64,000 bases of DNA from Paragordius varius (taxonomy: Eukaryota; Animalia; Nematomorpha). The DNA lies in contig OZ176052.1 of the NCBI GenBank assembly GCA_964247055.1, positions 806,001 through 870,000 of the forward strand. Reading direction: 5' to 3'. Below the pieces are notes generated by a model that saw nothing but the letters and a program-made list of their open reading frames with translations, was not told where the DNA came from and made no database searches. Shown here piece after piece: positions 4,763-64,000 of the stretch. The translations under genes were made by a program, and so were the position numbers. Each line of letters starts with the position of its first letter. The stretch's first letter is position 1.

Positions 4763-7064
4763 ATGCTTGTGAATTCTGGTGCTACTTTAGGCTCAAACGC
4801 TTTCGCCTATTCCCAACAATATCAGGTAGGTTTTAATTTTTTTAATATTCTAATTTGGTTTTCACAAAATTTAATAAATTTTTCCCGAAATTTATTTGAA
4901 AAAATTTTTATTAATTAAATAAATATATTTTTAAATCCAATTTATTTAGCATCATAACAATGTTTTACCGCAATTGTTTAAAAACACAATGAACCATCAG
5001 CCCAATATCCAAAGTACTGAAAAATCCACTCTAAATTCAATTCTTCAATATGGTGCTGCTTCTGAGTTTCAAAATTCTTTTCACAATACTGATGAGGATA
5101 ATTCAAGTTCATCTTCTTCAGTAACTTCATTTGAGTTACAACCAAACAACTTTAATAATGGCAACAAAGTTAATTTAATGGGGGATATTAGAATGTTAAA
5201 TGAAAACTTTGCCAAAATGTTTTCGGCAAATCTTGAAACTTACAAGCAACATTTAATGAATTCACCGCGAATTAATTACCGTAATAAAGTTTGTTGTACG
5301 CAAGATAATTCTACCACCACTAATAATAAGCCCAAAAACGATAAAGTTACAGATGATTGTTCTTTAAATTTTATTAACCAAAATAATAATGGTATATTAG
5401 TTAATCGTCCCAACAATTTATCCATTAAAGTACAACATCAACAACAGCAAACTAATAATAATTGCCAAACTTTTGAGCAACTTGGTAGCAGTAATGCTAA
5501 TAATGTTGTTTGCAACAATGTTTCTCCATTCTCCTATGACATGATTGGATCACCTTTTGGGGGCAGTGCGTCATTTTCATCATCTTCGTGTGGGAGCGGA
5601 CGAACAGGGGACCGTTCAACTGGTTCCAATTCCTCTCTATCTTTGGAAAATAACCAACAAAGTTGTTTGATGACTCTTGTGAATAATGCTCAATCTATGC
5701 GTCATCAAACTCAACCCGTAATCAGTGGTGGAATGAGCCGTTATAAAACTGAACTTTGCCGACCCTTTGAAGAAAGTGGAGAATGTAAGTATGGTGACAA
5801 ATGTCAATTTGCTCATGGTATGGGGGAGATGCGGAGTTTATCCCGACACCCAAAGTATAAGACTGATTATTGCCGTACGTATCACAGCATTGGGTTTTGT
5901 CCATATGGGGCTCGTTGTCATTTCATACATAATGGGGATGAAGCGACCATGATAAATCCTAACGTCGCCGCAAACAATATTCTGATAAATAATGGTAAAG
6001 CGAATGGACCTTTGGGTGGCAGCCACATGAATAATAAAATGAGATTTGTTGTACCAGGTAACAATGTGAGTAGTACCAATAATAATAATCGTTTACTTGG
6101 CTCTCGTCCATCTCTTCCTATAATTAACAACACGAATAATATGTTGCATAATCCTTTATCTATAATGACTCCTAATAATGGTGCTTTCAACAATAATAAT
6201 ATTAACAATAATGCTTTAAATCGACACGCCTCGTTACCTGTTGCTCTGAAATCCGAGGATATTGAATTTCTTCGCAACACTCTTTTGAGCGCATTGAATA
6301 CTAATTTATCACCTAATAATAATAACACAGAAGCTGATTTTAATAATTCTTCAATGTCTGTTACTAGTCATTTGGCTCAATATCAAACACCTAAAACGAA
6401 TAATTTACTTGCATACAAGCCTGGTGCATCGAAAAAAGAATTTGTCAATTTGGATTGCAATACGGATTCGGGGTTTGAGGATAACTTTAGCGCTATTTTC
6501 ACTTGCTCTAACAACAACACTCTACAACCAAAGCTATCAAATTTAAGCATCGGCAATGACACACCTAATACCAATAATAAAGCTGTTTTAAATTTGCTCA
6601 ATAATTCTCTTCGTGTTGGCGCTGATACTGATCGTCATGATACGGTAATTACTAACTTTGACTCTGCTAAAAATTTAATCAAATCAAAACCAATGAGTCA
6701 CACTCTTTTCTGTGATATTAACCCAAATCATGGTAAACAGCAACAACCAACTAAATTTGCTGACAAATATATGGATGATAAACCAAAAGGTGTTTTTGCT
6801 GATAGTTGTGACGATACAACCGTGTCAACTAAACCTCAATTGTCATCATCATCCAACTTATTATCTTCTGGTAGCAGCTTTAATAATAACAACAAGTGTG
6901 AAGAACAATTGTCGTTATTATCAAACCCACATCATAGCAATAATTTGTCAGACGAAAGCCACATTCTGCCAAACAAAATAATCCAGCAGACGATTGAACA
7001 AACCTCTACAACCGCTCTAAGGCTCCCTATTTTCAAAAGTTTTACACGTAGCGATAAGTCATAA
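4763..7064 (+). CDS. Tis11: Tis11/ZFP36 (tristetraprolin-family) tandem CCCH zinc-finger mRNA-decay factor, about 725 aa
   Basis: join(4763..4825,4950..7064). Exon 1 ([21 protein letters not shown]) is joined in phase 0 across a 124-nt GT-AG intron to the long ORF. Tandem fingers [27 protein letters not shown] and [27 protein letters not shown]-terminal RLPIF CNOT1-binding motif. The short-first-exon, long-second-exon layout matches the family. Confidence 0.95.
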
Positions 7065-16300: not shown

Positions 16301-19300
16301 ATGATTTTTTGCCAGAAATTATAAAAATAAGGTAAGTTCACCAAAAAAACGATAGAATAATTTTTACATTGTTCAATAACTAATACAGTTAAACATTTTA
16401 AAGCAAAACTCAAAAAGAAAATTAAAGAATGCAGAGGGAAAACAATCCTACATATTCTTTCTTTCAGTATACAGTATGAGTAAGTACAAATTGCTAAAAA
16501 GTTATTAATTATTGCCAAATAGGATTTATATACAACAAAGGGGAGTATTATTGGCTCATAGTTATTTTTTCAATTTTTACTATTATTATTAGAATAATTC
16601 TCTTTGCTGCATATGCTATTTGTCAATAATTAATAATTTTCAAGCAAAATATCCTTCTCATTTAGTATAAATTCAATTTTACTTAACAAAAAAGGTCACT
16701 TGTAATAGTCAAAAATTTATTCTTTGAATAAATTTAATTATTGCTGAATTACTATTCCAATATTAATTTTCCTTAGAGAATAATAAATTTATACTCTGCA
16801 TCCAAATTTTTCAAATGAAAAAAACTAACTAACCTCAACTTTAACATTTTCCAATTTTTCAGCATGCTTGTTAATAATGTGTTTGCGAACAAAATCGGGC
16901 CCCTTAAACTTTTTACCACTCAAGGGGCATAACCATTTATCCTTGGATAGTTCTTGTATGTTATCCTTAATAAATTTTTCAACTTCAGTATCATAGTCTC
17001 TGAGACCTAAGACGCGTGCATCCTCCAACGTGATTTGTGCATTATGAAGTGAAATGAAATTGGCTATTTTCTTTTCAAAACTTTTCATCCAATCATAAAC
17101 TGTAAGATAATATGTTAATGAAATAAATAACCAGTTGCAAAGTTATCATACCATTTGGACTTAAAGTTAGTCCTAGAACATTTTAAGTTTGTCCTTAAAC
17201 CTTTCAAGTTGTTCCTTGAATTTTTTAAGAATGTCCGTAAACACTTAAAATTGGTCTTTAAACATTTCAAGTTGGTCCTTGAATTTTTAAATATTTTTAT
17301 AGATATTTTATCGATTTATAGCCCATAATTTTTATTTGCCACATATTATTACTTCTTTTGGTTATCATGTTTTTATTTCTATGCAACATGAACCTATTTA
17401 TTGTAAAAATCTATCTAATAGACACATTCAAAACAACCATCATTCATTAAATACTTTTCATAAAAATATATATTAATTATTAATGTGTAGTATATAAGGA
17501 TTTCTTAATTCTGACAATGCAATGTATATATCCACACCTCTTTTGACAATATATCACAAACATAATGATTCCCCCTTTTGAAGAATGCCATTCTCTATCG
17601 GGTAACTATTAATAATGTGATATCAGAAAGTTTGTTCTGTGGAACTATACAATGAAAACAAAAACTCATAATAAAATTATTAATAAGATTTAAAAGGTTA
17701 TGGTGTCAAAGTCAATTTCTCAAAAACCAAATTAATGTACGATAATCCCACCGCTAAATACCCATGCAGCGTATGTAGAAAAGAAGTTAAATCAAATTCT
17801 GTACGCTGCAATTCTTGTCTTCTATGGGTACACAAAAAATGTAGTAGCCTTAAATCTATAAATGATTACGATAAACACTATAAATGCTGGACATGTTTAA
17901 ATTATAATATTAGTTTAACAACCAACCCGATTCCCAACCCTTTCAATATGGAAACAGTTAGCAGTTTTTGCTACTTAGGCGATATGATATCAGCCGGTGG
18001 AGGAATAGAACATGCAATTAAGCATCGCATATCACAAATGTGGAAAAAATACCATTCGTTAAAATCAATAATAAATACGTCAAACTACAAACTAAATGTG
18101 CCATTTACACTACAGCCATCCGTCCCGTTCTCACATATGCATCCGAATCCTGGCCGATGTCAAAAACAAATGAATCCAAACTCATAAACGCTGAATCCAA
18201 ATTATTGAAAACAATATTATTTGCACACAATCCCTCTAACAATTATACCGAATCCATAAACCCGTACCATATACTCAATCTCAACCCCGTCAACAACGTC
18301 ATCCGAAATCTCCGGTTACAATGGGTTGGCTGGGCATGTTGAGAGACGGCAAGATACTCACATTCTTAAAACTATGAAAAATTACTCGGTTGAACTACCA
18401 GCGAAATCCGGTCGACCCCATACCACATGGCTCAACACAATAACTAAAGACCTCGAATCGCTCAATTTAAATCTAGAATTAGCCAAATCAAGAAAAGAGT
18501 GGAAAAAACGGGTGTACCGTCATTTAATGGCGAATCCCCATACAAATGAATGATGATGATGAATGATGAAGATTATAAACAAAAAGAATACGCCAATTAG
18601 TTTAACAAAAAATAGTGTTTGTTCTTCGATAAATCAGGTGTTTTAATGACCAAACCTCAGACAAAACTAAAAATCCAAGCTAGAGCGTGATAGTAAAATT
18701 GCCACAGCGCGTTAAAGAAAAAATGTTACTTACTCTATGATAGGAGGCCCTAAGATGTGCTGGTGGAATATTGATTTGTAAAATCCGTAATATAATGAAA
18801 ATCGAAAATAAAATAGAAAATTAATTATAAACAAAAATTATAAACGATGTGTGAAACCCTTTCACCGTCAATAGTAATCGCAGACTAGTTTCGTGCTTGT
18901 TAGCACTAATCAGTAAGACACAACTATTTGACTTGACTTGGGGTTTTCACACAATCCGTCATTTACCATTAAAATAATGTATACGCCCACACATATAAAG
19001 TCTGAAAGAAATGTTAATACAAATATATTTTTGCAATTTCTTTGTTTTTTCATAGAATCTATGTGTACACTTTCACATTAATATAATTGTCATCAACTAA
19101 TATTGCCTCAAGTATTCATATAAAACTACATTTTCACCTTATAGCTTTAAGTTAACCTCTATAAAGTATGCATTCTTTAAAAATGAATCATTATGTATGT
19201 GACATGTTATGAAAGGAGGTGTGGATATACATAACACTGTCAGAAGAATTAATTTTAAATTCTTAAAGAAAAATCTTATAAATACAGCGACCGGAAATCC

Positions 19301-34019: not shown

Positions 34020-37000
34020 AATAAACTAAAGCGCTATTTAAAATCTATATACTTTATATCAGTGGGTAATAAATAATTTTTTCTAAAACTTCACATAAAA
34101 AAGGTAGGCAAGCATTTACTTGATGAAGTCGAGTCCGAACTCGAACTGGAAGAATGGAAAGACGAGCACGAGGAACTCCTGGATGAGCCATGCTAAAAAT
34201 ATTTTATTAATAAAAGTTTTTTTTGAAAGATATGTTTAAAATAACTTAAATAAAAATGATTACCAAATTTTACAATTACAGTTTATTAAATTACTAAAAA
34301 CGTAAAACTAAATAACTTATTTTTTAGAGAAAGATATGTTTAAAATAACTTAAAAAAAATGATTATTACCAAATTTTACAATTAGAGTTTATTAAATTAC
34401 TAAAAAAAGTAAAACTTAATGACCACCGACTTATTTTTGAAAAAAAAACCTTAATATTCCTTCCTATAAAAACTTTATAATCAGGAAAAAAAATGTTTGG
34501 AAATATACTATTAAGGGAGAATACCCAATTTAAACGATACAAAACAATGAGTTAGTTATATTATATTAAAAATTAGAAATATGGTGAATTTTTTTATAAA
34601 ATTTTTTTTTTAATTTTTTACGTTTTGTCTTCTTTAAATTTTCTTCAATATTTATACTACTTAAAAATATAATTTTAATTATCTCGTAGAATTTATTAAA
34701 TTGAATTATATTCAAATTTTCGATACATTGTAGTATTTTTTCAATTTTTACTGTTTAAAATTTATATTTTTACCTAGCTTACTTGTAAACTAATAAAAAA
34801 AATTATTTCAATTCAAATGTTGAAAAATATTAAAATTATAATATTTTATTAAACCAATTAAAAATATTATATAGATAGATAGATAGGTAGATATTAATAA
34901 AATAAAATACCCGTTTAGCTGGTGGTTTTTCTCTGAAACATACAAAAAACATAATATATATATATCATTTACAATTCAAATTCATCTTTAAACAATTCAA
35001 ATTCACCCTCGAACAAATCAAATTCACCCTTAAACGATTCATATTCACCCCCGAACAATTCAAATCCTCCTTAAAAAATTCAAATAATCCTTGAACAATT
35101 CAAATTTACCCTTGATCAATTTTAAATAAATCTTGAACAATTCAAATTCGCCCTAAAAATAAAGTATGTGTTTTCAAGCTAATATAACTCATTATTATCA
35201 ATATGCAATATATTTTTATGGCTAAAAAAATTCAGTATAAAGGTAATTTTAATCTTCTTAGAAAACACATAATTTATTCACAGTAATTTGTATTGTTCAA
35301 GAGTGAAATTTAAGTGTAAATGATATTGAATAATTATTTCTAAACTTTGCCAATCAGTTTAAAAAAGTATATACAAATTTAATTTAATTAACATTCAGTA
35401 AAAAACATATTTTTTAGGTACTTAACACAAAATATATAAACTTATTTTTTTAAAAAAACCAAACAGCCAATTAAAAATATTTATAAAAATAATCATAATT
35501 TATTGTAAAAACACCGACAGTTAGAGAACTTAACTTAAAATTAATCAACAAAATTATAAAAATACTCAAAATTAAAAGTTAAAAATACCATATTTAAACT
35601 TATTCATTAAACTCTGAGTTAAACAAAATCTCTTTAAATAAAAACATTGGAAAAAAAACACTTTTTAGAAGTATTTAAATATTAAAATCTAACAAATCTA
35701 TCAATTTTACAAATTTAATCAACCAATTATTATTGCAATATTCAAACAAAACTTAAAAAAGCAAACTTTTCTTTATTATCATGCATTTCATGTTCTTCAA
35801 TCTCAAAATCAAGTTTTTCCTCATCATCTGGCCCATTGTTATTATTATTGTTAGCAAGTGAAGAGTCTGGCATGTCGCCATTTTGTTGTCCGCCGCTGGT
35901 TGCCATGGTGATTCCTGCCTCCGAAGTCACATGACCGCTAAAACTGTCCTCTAAATCGCCAATATCTTCCATATCATCATTATCAAGTATATCAGGTCGG
36001 ATGCCATTTTCGTCGTTTTTGGCCTCCATTTTTTCGTCTGCAATACCACCATTGTTGTTTTCATCATTGATTGAGGTATTTGGCTTTTTTTCTGTAAGGT
36101 TTAAAAAAAAGTTAGTTATATAAAGATTAAAAAATTACGTGTGCCAATATTATCAAATAATATTAGAGATTATTGCACTTAGAGTAAAAAATAAAAGTAT
36201 ATTGATAATTCATACATCATGAAAAGGACAAATCTGATTGGTAAAAAAATTTGATACATTCAAAAAAGGAGTAAAATCACAACCCTACTCGTAATATTTA
36301 TTCTTTTACTCCATTGTAAAATAAATAAGAGTTTAAGATAAATATATAGATAAAAAGGCATATAAGTATCAATTCAAAGTTTCATTTGACTGTTAAAACC
36401 CCTGAATGTTTCCCCTTATCGATAAAAACTATTTTCAATGTCTTAGTTACAAAAAAAGAAAATAAATTTTCAATTTACCTTTACTTTTACGCGTCGATAC
36501 CGCCTTTTTCTCATTGTTGGCCTCTTTTTGGTTTGTTCCGGTTGCCATGGCGACGCCTTCAGAACTCAGCTGATTTCCACCACCCAATGAAGATACACCA
36601 TATGATTCTGAATCTAAGGCTTTTACATCGGCATCCGTACCACCTTCCAGTCTAACAATCACTAAAGAATAAAGCAAAAGTTTATGATCAATTTACAGAA
36701 AAATAAAATATTTTTTAAAAGGCCATTTTAGTTAATTTAACAAAAAAGCGACTAATTAATGTTGTATAAACTTACCAGAATCCATAAATTTGACAATGTC
36801 AGGTATGTGGTATTGATTAAGGATAATCTTATCAACCAAGCCAGACTCATAAAAATCCATGAAAATGGCAAGTCTAAGCTTAACTTTATCCTCTTTTTCT
36901 TGTTTAAATTTTTCCCTCTCATCCGGATGATACTTATTTTTAAACCTAAAAATTGGTATAGAATGAGAAAAATATAATAATTTCAATACATGGTGCCTAA

Positions 37001-39530
37001 AAAGTTAAATAATGTATAAATAATACCTGAAAAGTTACACATTTTTTTGGTATATTGACAACTTTGAAGTCATCACACATTACACAAAATGAACACAAAT
37101 CATATATATATATACAATCAAAAAAAAGTGGTACAATAATAATTAAAATACCAAAAAATGTTAAAAATAAGAAGTATATTATATATCCATTTCTTCGCCG
37201 CGAAAAAAAAACATTATTAAATAAACTTTTCATAAACCCGTCCCCAATAAAAAAGGGAAAAGGGTAGATTTAAGTACACTTACATATTTTCTTAAACAAA
37301 AATAATAAATTGAATGAATATGCATTTATGAACATATATAAACAACATCAGTTTTTATACAATAAATCGTAGATTTCGTAGCTCACAAAATAACTTTTTT
37401 TTATAAAATTAAAATGAGTAAAATAAATTTTTAACATAAACAAATCTATTAGAGTTTCCACTCGGACTTGTAGCAACCTAAAGCAAAATATGTAATTTAT
37501 ATATGTATAATTATATGCATTAATTTTAATATATAAAACACATTGTTATCAAATTTGGTGTACGTGATTATACTTATTAAAATTTATGCGACAGAGGCAG
37601 ACGATATTTTTTATAACAAGAAATCTTTCCAATTTATTGTGGTTAACTTGTTAATTAAATTTATTTTTTGCCTCTAAAAAAACATATGACGCGTATCAAC
37701 CTGGTGAATTTCTCTTATAAAACTTTGAAGTGTTACGGCCTGAGTTTGAAATGTTTAAGGACAAAAGGCGTTTAACAGAATTTAAGTAATACCTATAACC
37801 CCCAATACAATACAGCAAAATTAAAAACTAATCAATATCCAAAACTACTAAATGTAATGAAAACTCACCATTCTTCACCCTTGTGGGCATTAAAGAAGAG
37901 TGAAATAGCATGGCGTTGAAATTCCAAAGTATAATTTTTGTAGCGACGTACAGCTTCTTCGGGTTCGATAGTGTCCTCTTGTTCAAGAAGGTATTGCTTA
38001 AAGCTCATCAAATGATTATCATCATGGCTGTACCCAGATCTAAACAAAATTTTTTTATAATTTTAATTAAACCATTTCTTTTTAAAAGAAAGAGAAGACG
38101 CCTTCATCTTTTCCTATGTGGTTGTTTGTGTTGGTAAAATTAATAATTGGAATATCGGCAGCAATGTTTATTTTGCTCCCAAAACCTTTGGTTATCCTTT
38201 TGAACATCTTTTTATTTTACGTAAATACTTTATTTAAAGCTAAACTATATTTACAAATCACATGAATAGTATGAATAAAAATACATTCGCCATATAGTAA
38301 CAGCATTTTTTATGGCTAATATCGCCGGTAAAAACAAAAAATGACTATAAACTAATAATTTTTCTCATTGTATGCTAGCTTGTGACAATATTTAATGTTA
38401 ACTAGCAATGCATTTAACACTAGTACCTTAGTATTTACGATTGTCATCATATAGAGTGAGTTGTATAGAAAAAAATTAGAATCAAAAATTATGGTTATAT
38501 ATATGTCTTTATTTTTGCGTTTAATCTTTACACATTAAGAGAAATTTTGTTAGGCAATTCGGTTTTTAATGGGCTAAAAAGGAATTTGATTAACATGTTT
38601 TTTGCCATGTTTGATAATTTTTATTTTTAATCAAACTATCATTGCGAACAAAGTCCACTGTATTTTCTCTCCAGGTAAAAAATGAAAAATCATACACGGA
38701 AATAGACAAGTATATTAAATCCTCTTTTAGTTAATTAAAATAGTGAAATATCCAATAATATGACTCGTTTAAATGATTTTCTTTATATAAAAATATTCAT
38801 GTGTTTAATAAACTTCAAACCTATAAGACATGGCCCCTGGGGGTAAGGGGTGACCCGCTAAGTGCCCTGGGGGTGGGTACTCTGCACCTAGGGGAGGTAG
38901 TGGACCCCAATATGCACCAGGAGGGCCATAATATGCGCCCCCGCCAACAGCTGCTGATGATTCATCCCAATCAGTGCCTGGTCGACGGCCCTTTTTATTA
39001 TTATTGTTATAATGTGTGGGAGGTGAATATTCTTCATATCGTCTGCGTTTAGTGGCACCTCCTGCTTCGAAGTCTCCACCGGAAGCAGAAATATTTCGAT
39101 AATTTTCTCCACGAGTCTTATTATTGTTGTTGTAAGCATTATTGGGATTCGAACGTACGTTCCGGTTGTATTGTTCATTTCTGCTGGTAATAAGAAGCAA
39201 ATGTAAGGAATGTATAAGGCTTTAAGAATATATATATGCGGTTTATATAATAAAAAGAGTTAGATGGTATAAAACCCATAAAAGCCATGATTAAAACATA
39301 TTGGTGGTAAAACAAATTTTTCACTCAAACCCAGTCAAAAGTTATTCATTTCCATAAAACTATATAAAAAAGTTTTGTAAGATAAAACTAGTTATGTAAA
39401 AATATGTTTAAACAAAAATACAAACTTACCTATCCTCCCAATCCTCTTTGGTTCTAACATCATTTCGCTCTCTTCGAAACTTATCGCGTCTGCGCTTGTC
39501 ATATTCTTCATCGGATTCGGGAGCAGCCAT
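13393..39530 (-). CDS. SRRT: Serrate RNA effector / Ars2, 21 exons, about 1131 aa
   Basis: Exons in minus-strand order: 39430-39530, 38821-39183, 37869-38039, 36776-36945, 36479-36661, 35767-36091, 34911-34932, 34120-34192, 33463-33507, 32925-33010, 30781-30921, 29979-30159, 29449-29663, 28338-28545, 26929-27036, 24174-24316, 21176-21329, 16834-17099, 14822-15077, 14357-14465, 13393-13468. All GT-AG, phases consistent, total 3396 nt. Ars2 motifs: [116 protein letters not shown]-stop. Exons 7-9 and 13-16 are supported mainly by phase and composition. Confidence 0.93.
13553..13735. mobile_element. MITE family B (~185 bp, long inverted ends), representative copy in SRRT intron 20
   Basis: TA-flanked CAGTATGAGTAAGTA..TTGCTAGAAAGTTATT.ATTATTGCCAAATAG ... 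CTATTTGGCAATAATTAATAACT.TCTAGCAAT.TACTTACTCATAC.G. Other copies at about 16472-16666, 27134-27735 (several partial copies), 33596-33768 and 40930-41068. Confidence 0.8.
15240..15437. mobile_element. Possible hAT (Charlie/Buster-like) end remnant
   Basis: GTTTGACACCCTTG at about 15425-15438 resembles the reverse complement of a CAGGGGTGTCAAAC-type terminus. GGCTTCGCGGG.CGCATT at 15243 recurs at about 60997. No partner end was found. Confidence 0.3.
17490..18572 (+). mobile_element. 5'-truncated, frameshifted RTE-clade LINE in SRRT intron 17 (antisense to host)
   Basis: [12 protein letters not shown] (late RT motif), PHD-like [42 protein letters not shown] and RLQW.GH motifs spread over three frames (ORFs 17735, 18040, 18326). 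Ends in a (TGA)n-type tail at 18546-18572, as expected for RTE elements. Confidence 0.88.
18845..18953 (-). ncRNA. Minimal type I hammerhead-ribozyme-like motif (G8-to-U variant) inside an extended hairpin
   Basis: Minus strand: CUGAUUA (18913-18907), stem II GUGCU/AACA/AGCAC, GAAA (18892-18889), palindromic ACUAGU as stem III, GUC cleavage triplet (C17 = 18883). Enclosed by helices GUCAAAUAGU/ACUAUUGAC and GUGUGAAAACCC/GGGUUUCACAC. Core position 8 is U rather than G, and stem I next to the core is weak. Confidence 0.55.
19095..19265 (-). mobile_element. Heavily decayed RTE reverse-transcriptase fragment
   Basis: The reverse complement (CTGACAGTGTTATGTATATCCACACCTCC...CATAATGATTC...AAGAATGCATACT.TAT.G.GGTTAACT) aligns by eye to 17500-17610 of the neighbouring LINE fragment. 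Confidence 0.55.
20330..21205 (-). repeat. Tandem array (5 intronic units of ~140-175 bp) that includes the 3' end of SRRT exon 17 and its donor
   Basis: GGTTACTTTCTCGATTAAGGACTCTATTTTGAGTTA, with small variants, starts at about 20401, 20548, 20689, 20852 and 20995, and at the true exon boundary 21170-21205. Confidence 0.9.
21590..21845 (-). mobile_element. Short degenerate RTE LINE 3' fragment nested in a family C element
   Basis: [13 protein letters not shown] (about 21835-21800) and [14 protein letters not shown] (ORF 21597-21803) match the C-terminus of the 876-aa RTE ORF in this window. Confidence 0.8.
22770..24110. repeat. Tandem array derived from the right arm of MITE family A (SRRT intron 16)
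   Basis: Repeated AAAAAGTATATGGTTGTCTTTT.AAAACCAAATATTTGTCTTTATATTTTTACGTTTTGTCC.TCC.TATAATTTCAATTTT units of about 110-130 bp that follow the complete MITE at 22500-22771 and decay toward exon 16. Confidence 0.85.
24330..25645. repeat. AT-rich tandem array (~120-bp units) abutting the acceptor side of SRRT exon 16
   Basis: Recurrent ATATCTTAAATTTAAAAGTAAAAAATTGAAAAATATAAT...GTATTTTTTTGTGTTTTAAAATT units, about 10 copies. Confidence 0.85.
28563..28970. mobile_element. Foldback-like MITE family C with subterminal 21-bp tandem repeats, representative copy
   Basis: Ends TATACCATTTACA ... TAAATGGTATA, with arms built of TTCAAATTCACCCTTGAACAA units around a conserved core (AAATTATGTGTTTT...AATATAACTCAT...GGCATAGTTTATT). 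Other full or partial copies near 17150, 19510, 20080, 21400-22030, 26400-26880, 30190-30450, 33130-33410, 34965-35325, 40500-40745, 42560-43022, 45625, 46310, 49935, 50825-51085, 51705 and 61905-62210. Confidence 0.82.
30930..32200. repeat. AT-rich tandem array (~150-bp units) abutting the acceptor side of SRRT exon 11
   Basis: Repeated TTTAATTTATCAAAA.TTTAGTTAGGAATT.AGAGTTTAAAATATAAAAA.GAAAATTTAAAGAATA.ACAACATTAAATAG.TGTTTAAA units. The distal units carry MITE-A arm sequence (TTATACGGATGGACAAAACGTAAAAA). Confidence 0.85.
33968..34016. repeat. (TA)n microsatellite
   Basis: About 24 uninterrupted TA units in SRRT intron 8. Confidence 0.95.
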
Positions 39531-39593: not shown

Positions 39594-40123
39594 ATGGTAT
39601 GTCTTCGTTTTTAATTTTTATAGATTAGATTTATTTTGATTCAAAATCGGGCTGGGAAAACGCGTTTAGCCAAATGGTTCATGAATTTTGAAGATGATGA
39701 AAAACAAAAGTTGATTGAAGAGGTGCACGCTTTAGTTACAGTGCGAGATGCCAAACATACAAATTTTGTTGAAGTTTTTAAACATTTTATATGAAGTTTC
39801 GAAACTTTAAGATAGTTTATAGACGTTACGCCGGCCTTTATTTTTGCATTTGTGTCGATATAACGGATAATAGTTTGTATTACTTGGAAGCCATTCATAA
39901 TTTTGTTGAAGTCCTTAACGAATACTTTCACAATGTGTGTGAATTGGATTTGGTGTTTAATTTTTACAAGGTAAGTACCTTTTTTTGATATTTTAACAAA
40001 TTTATTTATCAATACTTTTAGGTTTATACCGTGGTTGATGAAATGTTTATGGCAGGAGAAATTCGTGAAACAAGTCAAACAAAAGTCCTAAAACAGCTTC
40101 TTATGTTAAATGGATTGGAATAA
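39594..40123 (+). CDS. AP2S1: AP-2 complex subunit sigma, 142 aa
   Basis: join(39594..39596,39624..39773,39797..39970,40022..40123) gives [68 protein letters not shown]...[38 protein letters not shown], nearly identical to recalled animal AP2S1 and the same length. Introns are 27, 23 and 51 nt, all GT-AG, all phase 0. Confidence 0.96.
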
Positions 40124-58187: not shown

Positions 58188-58350
58188 GCACTTACCTGGC
58201 GCGAGGGCGAGGCTCGATCAAGAAGGAGCTCCCCTTAGTTTGAGACTTGGCCATTGCACCTCGGTCAAGTTGAAGGCTACGATTGCCCCAAATAGGGGCA
58301 AGCCGAGCGCATAATTTCTGGTTGCTAGACTCTGCGTACGCGCAGAGTCT
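58188..58350 (+). ncRNA. U1: U1 spliceosomal snRNA
   Basis: 5' ACTTACCTGG donor-pairing arm (58190), stem-loop I with loop GATCAAGAAG (U1-70K site), stem-loop II ATTGCAC (U1A site), Sm site AATTTCTG, terminal hairpin GACTCTGCG/CGCAGAGTC; about 163 nt. Confidence 0.96.
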
Positions 58351-60289
58351 TTATATTACGAAAAAATAAATTAGTTTTTTAATTTATGGCTCTGATTTTC
58401 AAGTCTAGTTTAAAAGTTCTGATTAAAATACCGTTAGTAATAGGGTTAGGCTATGAAAAATCGTAAATAATAACCCAGAACTCATATATTTTTTAATTTC
58501 GTGTTAAAATCTTATAAATAAAATTTTAAAGAATTAATAAGATATCCGGTTTCTGAATGATTTAAAGTTTATGTTAAATATAGAAAATAGGTTAAAAATA
58601 ATAAAACAGATGAATGTTACATGATTTGATTGATAAATGTTAAAAAGGACGAACTTGAAGTGTTCAAGGGCAATTTTGATGTGCAAATGGTATTATAATT
58701 ATAATTGTGACCAAGTTAGTTTATATAAATAAACGACTTAAACCTTAAATTTAAAATTATCCTGATTTTGTCAATAAAGTAAAGTAATTAATATTAATGG
58801 TATATTTGACTTTTTATATGATGAGACATTGTTAACATTTGTAATTTAGTTTCTTATATAAATTTAAAATAGGCATTTGTCGATTTATTATGTAATTTAA
58901 ATTTTTACTATACTACTCTGTGTAAAAAGCTGATCAATAATTGTTAAGCGTGTGAATGACAACAATATAAATATAAAAGTAATTTAAATATAATCTCAAA
59001 TATATTCATTTATTTATTTACAAGATATTCCTTCCTTAACCCAAAGTAATAACACCTCTTTTTAAGGTCGTTTTACGGGCGAAATATTTTGTTCATAAAA
59101 GTCTTTTGCACAAAGCTATGCAATAAAATTTAGGGAAATGCCTTGTATAAAGACTACGTTACCACAATTTTCCTCGGATTGTCTGGAAAAGTGAATCTAA
59201 AAAACAAAAAGGTTAACAAAATTTTGTGCATTTAAAACTGGCGTTTTAGTTTGATGCAGCATAATAGCTTTTAATTCAATCATCTCACACATGATAATTA
59301 ATGTGGAATTTTTGTCGACATAAATTTTATTCCATTGTAAAAATTTCAAAAAAATTTGCTTGATGAAAATAAAAATATATAAAATCTGTAAAAAACCTTG
59401 TATTATCTATGTCCATATATAACGTAAAAATACAGAGTTTTCTTATTCAAAAACAATATGCTAAAAAAATTAAATAAGCAAAAAATTTGAAGACTGTTAA
59501 AAAAACCATTTTTTATTAATACCGATTAATATAATAATTAAATTTTTCCGCCACAAAAAACAGTTGCAGTTTCGTTGATTGTTTGTTTAAACCAAAAATA
59601 AAACAACAGTAAAACTTGAAATTACACGGACAAAACGCAAAAATATAAAGACAAATATTTCTTCTAAAAAACAACCCTATTTTTTCAAACCTTTAATGAT
59701 ATTAATGAATTTATTAACAATTTACATATCTAATCTCTCCAAAACAATAAGAAATATTGGAATAAATTAATTTCAAAAAATATGATTGTCTTTTAGAAAA
59801 AAATATTGCCTTGTCCGTATAATTTCAATTTTTACTGTAATATATGCCCCTTTAAAATTCAAAAAAAATTTGTTGCAAATGTATTGCTATTTCCAACGTT
59901 TTTTTATAATTAACCATTTCAAACTTAGGTTCACTAAACGAATGCTACACAAATTTCGAATAAAAAATCATAAATAAAATTACAATATTAGTTAAAATAT
60001 AAATATAAGTTTATAGCGCCCTAATATAAAAATGTGTTAATAAACATTAAACATATTTTTGAATCAAGCCAGATATTTTGGGGGAAAAACATGTATTAAA
60101 TTGTTTTTATTACCAAAGAAGTTTCATAATGTAAGGTTAATTAACATCTAAATTAAAATATAAAAAAAATAGGTAAAAAAAGTTTCCAAGAAAAACATAT
60201 ATTTCGTAAAGCAATCTTATCTTTTATCCACAAAAAATCGGTTTCATTGATTAAATTTTTACGGTAATAACTTAGAATATATCGAAATT

Positions 60290-63200
60290 TCATACTTTAG
60301 CATATGTATCAACATATTCCTTTAAACTTTGAAGCACAATCTTCTTGGGTTTAGAAATATGCTCTATTGTACTGCTATTTTTATCAAAAGTTTCTTTATC
60401 TGTGTCGTAATAATGCTTATATTTTTGTTTAAACTCCGCAAAATTTTGAATATGTATGTAAGCTATACACATAGATCGACATGTATGTCCCCACAAAATT
60501 TCACATTCATTTGGAGGTCCATTGCTTGATTAACGAATAATTTATAACAGTAAAAATTGAAATTAGAAAGACAAAGTGTAATTAAAGGCAATCAAGTTTT
60601 TATATACCTTGATTTTTTTATAAAATAAATGAAGAGAAATGTAATTGTAACATACAATATTATATACTTCGAATTTATAACCATAAAATAGACAGTCTTT
60701 ATACAAAAAGTACGACAATCTTTATAAACAAAATATATATCCTTGATTTTTTACGTTTTCTCATAATAATCTAATTCTTAATATAAGGAAGGCATTTTAA
60801 ACAGTATATTTCGTTTTTTATCAGACAAAAACTTATTAAACCTATATGCAAAATATTGTAAATTATTAATACTTTTGTTCAGTTCCTGGACTCCCAATAA
60901 CAGCAAGCACGCCTGCCATTTTACGTGAAATTTGAATGCTGGGATGTTTCAATATAGGATCGTCTTGATAAAAAAATATATTAATATATTAAAAACGGCT
61001 TCGCGGGTCGCATTCAAATGGGCACTAACAAGTATTTTAAGAAATTTTAAACATAGTACTGGGAAAACTACTAATTATTTTAAGAAATTTTTTTAATTCA
61101 TTTTAGTCCAAATTCGGAAAAACCCATGTTAGAAAGTTGGTTTTTTAAGAAAATCATTTTTTTATTAGATTTTAGAAAATTTTGTGTTTGTATAAAAAAG
61201 CATTCCTTGGATTATAAGATAGTTGTTGTATGATATAACATATATATCTAAAAAATATTAATGATTCCTTTTTCCATATATTGGAAATTACTAATAACAA
61301 AACGAATCTATTTAAAACAGTAAAAATAAACATTATACAAACGTAACATCAACCTCTCCTCCATAATTTGTCAAAAAAAATCATAATAAATGTAATTTTA
61401 AATGATTTTATATAAAAAATGACAATTGTAAGCAAAATTATTTTTTTAAAAAATTTTAGGATGAAACAATTCAAATTTTTCTTGCGCCCTTAAATTTTGA
61501 ATTTTTACATAGAAATATAAACCCAAGTATTCTTGAAGGACATTAGATAAAATTTGCGAAGCCGGAATGTTATCATAATTTTGAGCAATTGAATCGGTTA
61601 CACGTTTTGCCAGTAAGTTTCGAATCAGCTGTTCACCACAACCTAAAATATGTATAAAAAACGGTTAGTAAAACAGATAATTTCATATTATTTAGATATC
61701 TTCCCTAGAAAATTGTATATAAAACCATATTTTAATAAAAGATTTTTATACTATATAAAAATATCTAACATTAATGATATTAAATTTATGATATTGGTCA
61801 TATAAAATGCAGAAAAGATTCGCATTGGCAGAAAATTATAAGATTTACCCACTCCAGATTCAATTAAATTAAATCTGAAGTCTTAAACCATCACAAGATA
61901 TGCATTTACAATTCATATTCACCCTTGAACACTTCAAATTCATCCTAAAAATAAATTTTGTTTTTTGGGCTAATATAACTAATTATAAATAATGAAATAT
62001 ATTTTTATGGCTTATTTTAATATTTTTTCAGTATTATTTTAATTTTAAACAAATTTCATTTTTTAAATATAAAAAAATATATAGGTAATTTTTAAGCTTA
62101 AAAAACACATAATTTATTTTAGGGTGAATTTGAATAGTTCGAGGGTGAATTTTAATTGTTTAAGGCTAAATTTGAATTGTTAAAGGGGGAATTTGAAGTG
62201 TAAATGGTATCTATTAAATTTAAATATTGAGATATCTTCGATTACATATACATAAAGTTTAAAAAAAATCGTTTCAATTTTTATTTTTTTAATTCATTTT
62301 TAATATTCTGATAAAAAAAATATATATCTAAAACTAAAATAGCTTTTTAAAAATTCTATCAATCCTTATAATGTCAGTTTTTCTCAAACTTATCATCAAA
62401 AATCAAAAAAAATTTTTTGAAAATGAAAAAAACTATAAAATTTTGAGTTACCTGTAGTTGAAACAGCTATCCCAAAGTTAGATGGATTTAAAATAACCGT
62501 TGTTTTCAACCTTTTTCTATTAGGTTGAGTATTGGATTTGTTTCGATTTTTAATTTGGTTTGAGGAATTTACAGTATTTTGGGCCCAGCAACCGCAGCCA
62601 TACATTGCTGCCTGTAGAAAGCGCATTTATAATTATTTCTCCGATATAAATACCAGTAAAATGATTTTAAAAGTTTGACATATAATTCGTTTACCACATG
62701 AGAAAAGCGAAGTAATAACTTTTAAAAAGTAATAAAAACTTTCATAAAGCGTAAACTTAAGAAATTCAATTTTTTCAAAAAAGTTTCCGATTTTTAGTGC
62801 CTTTTATTCTTGTAAAGCCTAATCTTTTAATTAATTCGTAAAAATGATGAGTATAATTTACCAATCTTTATAAAAAAAACTTAATTAAACTTTTAAATCT
62901 TTTTATTTCAAAATAACCCAAAAAATATATCTAAAAATATTATAAATATAATTTTATACATGACCAACCCGACCCTGAGATTTTAAAATGGAACCACCAG
63001 ATGAGACTCCAGCAAAATAATTTCCGTTCTGATCTATGCAAACAGCTCCAACTGTACCAATATTCAGGTCTAATAAATATAAATACTTTTTGAAAATAAA
63101 TTTTGTGTTTTAATTAGGACTTGATTTCCCAAAAGCGTATCGATGATATTTAACCATAATATATATGCATTCTGTGGCCCTTTAAGCGCATTATTAGGAA

Positions 63201-64000
63201 ATAATTTTCGTAATTATTGGAATCACTCATCTTAAACTGTTTGCAACCAAATATTTTTAACTAATTTTTTATTGACCCGCTAAAATAATTAACAAAATAT
63301 ATATTTTAAGTTTAAAAATTTAATACCATTAAAAGTATTTAATTATCTTTAAAAGAAAATTTTTTGATGCTTGATAGATGGATGGTCGTTGCGATTGGAT
63401 TTAAAAGCTATAAATTTTATATAGGGAAATTAAAAAAACTGTTATTTAGTTTTTTTGGAAAAAAATTCAAATAAGTATCATTTTTAAATCTAAGATTTCT
63501 TTTATAATGTAATAGAAAGTTAAGAAATATCATCTTTTTGTAAAACAAATCAAAATACCCAGAGGAGTTGAAGATATGAATTCGACATAACATAACTATA
63601 GAATTATGAATTTAAAAGAACTTTGGTTAAGTTCTCGGCGTCTTTTAATTTTAATTTGTTTTCCAAAAGCAATTTAGCTTCCGAGTAGAGTTTAACCGAT
63701 TTTGGCGGGATATCAAATGCGTTTAAGTTACCTATTTTATAAGATAATTCAAACCAGACGATGTCCTAGCATTTTCAATCACTATACTTTTATTTAGATA
63801 TATATCTTACCTGGGTGGTATTAGGACATTATAATAATTTGTAATTTGATGAGATAAAATATCAAAAGATAATTTGATTGGGTTCTTTGAATCTAAATAT
63901 AATTTTAATTTGGTTTACACATTTGACTCCACACGCAGAGCCCCACATCAAGTTGCATCCTTCCATCATTGAAGCGTCCCCTTCAATCTCACCCGTAATA
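60290..64000 (-). CDS. TASP1: Threonine aspartase 1 (Taspase-1, Ntn-hydrolase / asparaginase-2 family), 5' end outside the window
   Basis: Exons in minus-strand order: >64000-63921, 63892-63811, 63786-63755, 63731-63622, 63595-63559, 63069-62960, 62611-62452, 61642-61523, 60963-60873, 60524-60290, with consistent phases. Motifs GEIEGDASMMEG, KNPIKL, IPPS, TVGAVCID..G....VSSGG..LK..GRVG, AAMYGCGCWAQN, AVSTTGCGEQLIRNLLAK and EILWGHTCRSMCIAY match recalled Taspase-1. Exon 63559-63595 and the extreme 3' end are less certain. Confidence 0.9.

Follow-up and report, generated by a model that had tools for sequence, protein, structure and literature searches.

Can an animal gene be interrupted by a run of spliceosomal introns of less than 30 nt while its remaining introns measure hundreds of bases? 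The question is raised by one end of a 64,000-nt stretch of DNA (contig OZ176052.1, positions 806,001 to 870,000; called the window below, at its full length), where a reading made from the sequence alone (the sequence-only reading) had claimed four consecutive introns of 23–28 nt in the gene for Taspase-1, together with introns of 0.3–0.8 kb. Spliced alignment and comparison with other animals indicate that five segments of 22–28 nt are probably genuine U2-type GT-AG introns of a functional Taspase-1 gene and represent shrunken ancestral introns, the first five introns of the gene forming one cluster of micro-introns. We give this reading a probability of roughly 0.85.

Identification of the Taspase-1 Gene and Its Closest Relative

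The 110.6-Mb assembly (44 contigs) carries a gene that, judged from its sequence, is an orthologue of Taspase-1 (threonine aspartase 1). It runs on the minus strand from an ATG at window-equivalent position 64246, past the window end, to a stop codon at 60290; the G+C content of the window is about 25%. The exon carrying the nucleophile matched Pfam Asparaginase_2 (2.7e-8) and residues 232–265 of human Taspase-1 in PDB (5.6e-6), and exon 3 matched human residues 96–130 (E = 1.6e-7). By PDB search, exon 1 corresponds to Taspase-1 residues 45–69 and exon 8 to the Taspase-specific YGCGCWA block (residues 266–279). The PDB matches of exons 1, 3, 7 and 8 were Taspase-1 chains only, and PDB searches with exons 2, 4, 6, 9 and 10 returned nothing, or repeat-protein noise. 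The reading frame of 411 (or 418) codons contains no other stop and no frameshift, and the nucleophile and the catalytic and family motifs are all present. When the genome was searched for Asparaginase_2, two loci were found, namely the Taspase-1 gene and an aspartylglucosaminidase-like gene at 7.83 Mb of contig C3.

A large representative protein search with exon 3, in which the top matches were six repeat-protein false positives, recovered a protein of Gordionus sp. (P0147, 427 aa) and many exon-sized fragments. A word search with exon 3 by itself gave no candidate, its length filter leaving out full-length relatives; seeded with P0147, the word search yielded about 120 full-length Taspase-1 orthologues. 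In spliced alignment to the locus P0147 scored 442, the next best protein 317, and the median was 255. Several features are common to the gene and Gordionus and differ from the other aligned orthologues shown: a derived N-x-G before the nucleophile Thr, where the others have L-D; a His following GR(I/V)G at a site where the others have Gln; an insert behind CWA(E/Q)N, absent from the others and shorter in Gordionus than here in exon 8; and the ...LWGHTCRSMCI... block of exon 11, which is 75% identical to Gordionus. By these comparisons, the closest relative found is the Taspase-1 protein of the hairworm Gordionus, a nematomorph with a genome of 26.9% G+C; the hairworm genomes published so far measure 200–300 Mb.

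Shared with Taspase-1 (human structures 2a8i and 9e6u; P0147) are the Asparaginase_2 signatures, the Thr nucleophile, the YGCGCWA block and colinear exons. Compared with the rest of the family, the gene has a very short inter-subunit linker and a divergent C-terminus. The residue before the nucleophile Thr is Gly, as in Gordionus, and not the Asp of an Asp-Thr autoprocessing site. Gly-Thr is the usual autoprocessing site of other Asparaginase_2 enzymes.

In P0147 itself, residues ~135–230 make up an inter-subunit linker that is far longer than in the other aligned orthologues, with a high content of N, K, I and Y; some of this stretch may be unspliced intron in the Gordionus annotation. A second link to Gordionus lies elsewhere in the window (4974–7064, plus strand), where a 696-aa open reading frame (ORF) encodes a TIS11/ZFP36-type tandem CCCH zinc-finger protein. 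Its conservation is limited to the finger domain (about 10% of the frame), which is 85% identical to Gordionus, and the remainder is lineage-specific. With no more identity than this in a conserved domain, the animal is related to horsehair worms but is not the Gordionus species itself.

Five Probable Introns of 22–28 nt

Introns were located with a protein-to-DNA spliced aligner that allowed any GT..AG intron of at least 15 nt, at a flat penalty and in all three phases, and that forbade stop codons. The queries were a profile of 25 Taspase-1 orthologues and, one by one, 111 orthologues. Runs with single sequences over-fitted introns in the unconserved linker, and the profile and the counts over the 111 queries were relied on instead. 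The five micro-introns are as follows, each with the number of orthologues that chose it.

64153–64132 (window-equivalent, past the window end), minus strand: intron 1, 22 nt, phase 0; profile, 99/111
64065–64042 (window-equivalent, past the window end), minus strand: intron 2, 24 nt, phase 0; profile, 101/111
63920–63893, minus strand: intron 3, 28 nt, phase 1, GT..AG; profile, 87/111
63810–63787, minus strand: intron 4, 24 nt, phase 2, GT..AG; profile, 63/111
63754–63732, minus strand: intron 5, 23 nt, phase 1, GT..AG; profile, 47/111

The profile alignment, which is blind to intron length, returned exactly 22, 24, 28, 24 and 23 nt for the first five introns, and no competing solution was chosen by more than 14 of the 111 queries. 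GT and AG ends are found throughout the gene, in micro-introns and long introns alike. Three of the four introns of the sequence-only reading (28, 24 and 23 nt) thus stand at their exact coordinates, with GT..AG ends and profile support, and their removal restores the frame with the ...KYSKNPIKL... and ...LIPPSIV... motifs, as had been stated. The fourth, of 26 nt, is not forced by the frame and is considered below with intron 6.

The individual junctions agree with this model. In tblastn with P0147, the end of exon 1 and the start of exon 2 fall at adjacent residues, and the only interruption of the gapless alignment at intron 2 is an insertion of 8 codons full of stops. Once the 28 nt of intron 3 are removed, K-N-P lines up without gaps with human, Gordionus and Lingula; a 34-nt alternative would cost two residues. 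Intron 4 has an in-frame TAA directly after its donor, and after IPP there are just two in-frame GT..AG options, of 24 or 45 nt. With introns of 24 and 23 nt, 19 residues separate PP from the conserved I that follows, as many as in Gordionus.

Intron 5 is the least secure of the five, and it and the region of intron 6 are the weak points of the gene model. A real gene in which exons 4–6 are spliced otherwise would have, for example, a 45- or 62-nt intron that skips exon 5, leaving three or four micro-introns and one intron of more than 30 nt. In-frame alternatives of this kind exist at 63810–63766 (45 nt), 63827–63766 (62 nt) and 63782–63766 (17 nt), both Gordionus and Tubulanus choose such paths when used as single queries, and exon 5 is just 32 nt long, without stand-alone homology. 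The alternatives, however, delete the conserved IPP or the equivalent of the ...LVGEGA... strand, or need a 4-nt exon. The 24 + 23 nt solution was picked by the 25-sequence profile and was the most frequent over the 111 queries (63 and 47, against at most 14 for each alternative); its 24-nt intron lies at an ancestral phase-2 position, and it matches the 19-residue spacing of Gordionus. Different splicing of exons 4–6 is for these reasons considered unlikely, and introns 4 and 5 of 24 and 23 nt are retained.

Intron Positions Shared with Other Animals

The exon-sized proteins recovered with exon 3 are gene calls on Logan/ENA genomic contigs, and were aligned to frog Taspase-1 (whose numbering here equals the human one). 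Their homology breaks between residues 71/72 and 94/95, in codon 135 (phase 1), in codon 163 (phase 2), between residues 265/266, in codon 292 (phase 1) and in codon 329 (phase 1). These breaks coincide, in residue and phase, with introns 1, 2, 3, 4, 7, 8 and 9 of the gene described here.

The residues at the breaks read as splice sites would if translated. Just before the break at 94/95 stands ...Q, the residue expected from a CAG acceptor, and just after that in codon 135 comes E-L-L..., expected from G/GTGAG... (at least 12 fragments in each case). In codon 163 ...IPP is followed by W, as TG/G would read, and after residue 265 comes V. Within one 90% cluster, a spliced member of 359 aa has ...GRIPPC..., and members from contigs of 7.8–29 kb have ...GRIPPW... 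and then diverge. The break at residue 265 is seen in fragment P0130 (intron 7), and two fragments (P0136 and P0272) break at the position and phase of intron 9. At codon 135, where the intron is 28 nt here, the translation of one vertebrate-like fragment continues through an intron of ~70 nt. Given this agreement of residue and phase, seven or more of the ten Taspase-1 introns are, on this protein evidence, at old animal positions, and the two size classes would have arisen within this lineage.

A decaying pseudogene, or segments that are assembly or indel artefacts, might give a similar picture if the GT..AG ends were coincidental in AT-rich DNA; chance alone does often produce GT..AG pairs 22–28 nt apart, with a density of 7.3 per kb in the long introns of Taspase-1. 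Yet GT and AG mark the exact ends of all five frame breaks, four of the breaks match introns of other animals in both residue and phase, the 411 codons are otherwise intact with the catalytic motifs kept, and the same pattern recurs in AP2S1 and in the aspartylglucosaminidase-like gene. When the spacers were shuffled, any in-frame, stop-free GT..AG solution within 6 nt was found at frequencies of 0.10, 0.05, 0.02, 0.36 and 0.49 (introns 1–5), and the product over the five spacers gives a joint chance of ~1.5e-5 in this lenient test. A pseudogene or an artefact of this kind is very improbable.

A number of observations weigh against reading the five segments as ancestral introns of a functional gene. 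Searched on their own, exons 4, 5 and 6 gave no significant match. For introns 4 and 5 the shuffle test is not informative, with a solution in 36% and 49% of cases, because the flanking exons themselves contain GT and AG; these two introns draw their support from the profile and from the conserved IPP at which exon 4 ends, intron 4 also from its position. Single orthologues sometimes choose alternatives of 45, 62 or 153 nt at introns 4–5. The breaks that mark intron positions in other animals were deduced from amino-acid read-through and not from the DNA of the fragments. An A about 15 nt from the donor, proposed below as the branch site, is expected often in DNA of ~40% A, and the introns are too few for significance. 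With the TIS11-like ORF as query, a collection of 5.8 billion proteins yielded no protein of the same species.

Exons and the Region of Intron 6

The exons are listed below, with the evidence for each. Exons 1–2 lie beyond the window end.

63921–64000 in the window, running to window-equivalent 64041, minus strand: exon 3, human residues 96–130; gapless to P0147
63811–63892, minus strand: exon 4, 82 nt, KNP to IPP; tblastn alignments to Tubulanus and Lingula end ...IPP
63755–63786, minus strand: exon 5, 32-nt micro-exon, equivalent of the ...LVGEGA... strand; profile alignment
63622–63731, minus strand: exon 6, 110 nt, phase 0 end; open frame and profile
62960–63069, minus strand: exon 7 core, Thr nucleophile (...G/TVGAV...) and GRVGH motif; Pfam and PDB
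62452–62611, minus strand: exon 8, YGCGCWA motif and lineage-specific insert; PDB Taspase-1 chains
61523–61642, minus strand: exon 9, GCGEQL...; tblastn to Gordionus, Priapulus and Tubulanus
60873–60963, minus strand: exon 10; implied by spliced alignment of the Gordionus protein and of the profile (lower intron penalty); homology weak
60290–60524, minus strand: exon 11, stop codon TGA at 60292–60290; holds the block 75% identical to Gordionus

The word AWCAGCTGWT occurs in exon 9 (61624–61633), where it encodes ...EQLI..., and this is its single instance in 60001–64000.

Between exons 6 and 7, one long intron or two introns can be drawn.

63621–63086, minus strand: intron 6 as a single intron, 536 nt, phase 0; profile and 51/111 orthologues; largely unique sequence in the genome
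63621–63596, minus strand: candidate 26-nt intron, followed by a 37-nt exon (63595–63559) and a 489-nt intron (63558–63070)

The sequence-only reading had taken a probable 26-nt intron as required by the frame, but the 536-nt intron is also in frame and is preferred by the alignments. The 26-nt model does keep the frame, but as one of 13 two-intron solutions, and it is outside the 25 most frequent introns over the 111 alignments, the 25th of which was chosen 6 times. In its favour, a T-rich tract ending in TAG precedes the acceptor at 63070, which requires a donor in phase 1, and the 37-nt mini-exon has a G+C content of 35%, which places it in the top 4% of intron windows. Against it, richer windows occur in the same intron. 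The 26-nt intron may be real but is somewhat doubtful. The 25-nt candidate that had been suggested at the 3′ end (really 60295–60271, one base off) is unsupported: the frame reaches a TGA one codon past its GT, which makes the candidate unnecessary, and there is no homology beyond that point.

Long Introns and Repeat Content

The remaining introns of the gene are all long, and two of them hold repeats.

62959–62612, minus strand: intron 7, 348 nt, phase 0; 111/111 alignments; unique sequence in the genome
62451–61643, minus strand: intron 8, 809 nt, phase 1; 97/111 alignments; holds a foldback miniature inverted-repeat transposable element (MITE)
61522–60964, minus strand: intron 9, 559 nt, phase 1; profile and 111-query alignments; holds an old repeat
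60872–60525, minus strand: intron 10, 348 nt, phase 2; profile and 111-query alignments; mostly unique in the genome

The claim that introns of 0.3–0.8 kb occur in the same gene is borne out by these four (348, 809, 559 and 348 nt), plus intron 6 with 536 nt (or 26 + 489 nt). The foldback MITE of intron 8 is ~310 nt long (~61903–62218) and has 85-nt inverted arms made up of 21-nt subrepeats. Its family has more than 4,000 first-look candidates genome-wide, and among the 116 matches listed the full-length copies are 84–88% identical. In intron 9, ~200 nt (~60993–61190) belong to an old dispersed repeat with 32 other matches at 69–83% identity. Introns 6 and 10 show short, weak genome matches only, and intron 7 none. 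The idea that the long introns are short ones inflated by MITEs is therefore partly supported at best: repeats make up ~39% and ~35% of introns 8 and 9, but little or none of the other three.

Very Short Introns in Other Genes

Ultrashort introns had been proposed as a trait of the whole genome on the basis of Taspase-1 and AP2S1, and they are present beyond Taspase-1 both in AP2S1 (27 and 23 nt) and in the aspartylglucosaminidase-like gene (28 and 28 nt).

39597–39623, plus strand: AP2S1 intron, 27 nt, directly after the ATG and before codon 2
39774–39796, plus strand: AP2S1 intron, 23 nt
39971–40021, plus strand: AP2S1 intron, 51 nt, with a canonical GTAAGT donor
L002 1311–2849 (contig C3, ~7832000–7833540), plus strand: aspartylglucosaminidase-like paralogue, 7 Mb from the Taspase-1 gene
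L002 1481–1508 (phase 2) and 1622–1649 (phase 1), plus strand: introns of the paralogue, 28 nt each, GT..AG
L002 1763–1830, plus strand: later intron of the paralogue, 68 nt, followed by one of ~0.6–0.8 kb

The exon pieces of AP2S1 match Pfam Clat_adaptor_s at positions 2–50, 52–109 and 110–140, and the codon left out of the first piece fills position 51. Kilobase introns also coexist with the tiny ones, as had been claimed, because the domains of SRRT (37868–37999, 36771–36944 and 16816–17100 in the window) are spread over a gene span of at least 21 kb. AP2S1 (39594–40120, plus strand) is arranged head-to-head with the 5′ end of SRRT, whose N-terminal domain is at 37868–37999 on the minus strand.

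Splicing Signals and a Proposed Mechanism

The micro-introns have a G+C content of 17–23%, compared with 26–42% for the exons. Their donors are GTT, GTT, GTG, GTA and GTT, without an extended match to U1, and the acceptors are TAG (four times) or AAG (n = 5–9 introns); a pyrimidine tract is lacking. Any single micro-intron, if left in, would bring a stop codon within 0–20 codons, and the introns with lengths that are multiples of three (the two of 24 nt here and the 27-nt intron of AP2S1) all contain in-frame stops.

Genes for the U1 and U2 small nuclear RNAs (snRNAs) are numerous and canonical, and U2 keeps GUAGUA. A full-length U1 snRNA gene lies in the window itself (58188–58352, plus strand; Rfam RF00003, 118.7 bits), ~2 kb past the 3′ end of the Taspase-1 gene, and this copy has an intact 5′ splice-site-binding sequence, ACUUACCUG. 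Apart from this copy, U1 is matched most strongly on contig C6. A region of ~270 kb on contig C3 (~257000–527000) holds dozens of U2 snRNA matches, of which many are weak or truncated, and looks like a U2 gene array with decayed copies.

The segments could instead be removed from the DNA, by a programmed elimination like that of ciliate internal eliminated sequences (IESs), with the assembly representing the germline. In size they are similar to the shortest IESs of Paramecium, and programmed DNA elimination exists in some nematodes. The boundaries, however, are GT..AG and not TA..TA as in ciliate IESs, the segments share position and phase with ancestral spliceosomal introns, and the genome encodes many canonical U1 and U2 genes. 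DNA elimination as known from animals removes large blocks and not intragenic 25-mers. Removal at the DNA level is considered extremely improbable.

For introns spliced from RNA, we infer splicing itself, recognition by intron definition and the branch site along the following lines. Ancestral animal introns would have shrunk to 22–28 nt in a hairworm-like lineage, and the remaining five introns, largely at ancestral positions, would be those now of 0.35–0.8 kb, two of them with transposon debris. Recognition of the micro-introns may take place across the intron (intron definition), a mode that has been proposed for the 5′-clustered microintrons of flatworms (PMC6530080). The signals would be little beyond GT at the 5′ end, an A-rich stretch ~15 nt downstream as a possible branch site, and (T/A)AG at the 3′ end. 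The branch point would be an A ~15 nt from the donor, echoing the A residues at a fixed distance from the 5′ end in myxozoans and Dicyema (PMC13644364). The spliceosome involved would have canonical U1 and U2 recognition sequences.

Comparison with Known Systems

Introns of less than 30 nt were long thought to be absent from animals, and the only cases published as of September 2026 were in dicyemids and in myxobolid myxozoans (Hadjez et al. 2026, PMC13644364); in these two reduced parasite groups they have been read as part of genome compaction. In the dicyemid Dicyema japonicum and in myxobolids, as here, GT-AG introns of 20–28 nt lie at conserved positions between conserved exons, without a polypyrimidine tract; short introns cluster with short neighbours, and U2 is canonical. 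Those groups have a weak 5′ signal (little beyond GT plus A/T), to which the few donors listed above may be similar, and A residues at a roughly fixed distance from the 5′ end (PMC13644364), which the putative branch-site A here may parallel. The lengths found here (22, 24, 28, 24 and 23 nt; 27 and 23 nt in AP2S1) all fall below 30 nt. In dicyemids and myxobolids, however, tiny introns are the bulk class (median 22–27 bp) in the compact genomes of highly reduced parasites (PMC13644364), whereas here they share genes with introns of 0.35–0.8 kb and larger, in a 110-Mb, transposon-rich ecdysozoan genome. They do not appear to dominate: five of the ten Taspase-1 introns measure 348–809 nt, SRRT spans at least 21 kb, and MITEs are abundant.

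The main text of PMC13644364 names no nematomorph, and the word 'intron' is absent from the Gordionus genome preprint and from a Mermithidae/Nematomorpha comparison. A full-text search of the hairworm literature, with introns and tiny-intron terms, found no report of such introns. It is rather likely that hairworm-type ecdysozoans represent a third independent animal lineage with introns of less than 30 nt, and the first in which these form a discrete class in a transposon-rich genome with kilobase introns; shrinkage would then lead to a stable, length-constrained state (22–28 nt) in 5′ clusters via intron definition, with neighbouring ancestral introns drifting to hundreds of bases. If this is true, extreme intron shrinkage would not be a by-product of genome compaction. 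Ten introns within 4 kb, five of 22–28 nt and five of 350–800 nt, make a remarkably clean case in another phylum and would separate intron shrinkage from genome size, and the gene would offer a natural substrate in which a canonical U1/U2 spliceosome handles a 22-nt intron, with a 32-nt exon nearby. Gene finders and aligners with a minimum intron length of ~20–40 nt would truncate or frameshift such genes, and micro-introns missed in this way could inflate the apparent gene loss reported for hairworms.

The tiny introns of ciliates (~25 nt in Paramecium, 15–16 nt in Stentor; PMC9505925, 10.1101/2021.08.05.455221) are of the same size class, and their retention likewise leads to premature stops. 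Ciliates, however, have essentially only tiny introns, together with a different genetic code and nuclear organisation, whereas here the code is standard and long introns coexist with the tiny ones.

The layout resembles that of the microintrons of flatworms (Opisthorchis felineus and other trematodes, cestodes and monogeneans; PMC6530080), which are likewise bimodal with kilobase introns, adjacent to one another and biased to the 5′ end. The same 5′ clustering is seen in Taspase-1, where introns 1–5 are micro-introns and 6–10 are long, in the aspartylglucosaminidase-like gene (28, 28 and 68 nt, then ~0.6–0.8 kb) and in AP2S1 (27, 23 and 51 nt). Flatworm microintrons have been under-called when the minimum intron length of pipelines was set too high (PMC6530080). 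They differ in size, with a peak at ~37 bp, a second at 90 bp and a class boundary of <75 bp (PMC6530080), against 22–28 nt here, and they belong to Platyhelminthes and not to an ecdysozoan. The Taspase-1 gene would thus link the dicyemid/myxozoan size class with the 5′-clustered, bimodal layout of flatworms, and what appears to be new, as far as the literature searched indicates, is this combination in an ecdysozoan with a repeat-rich genome.

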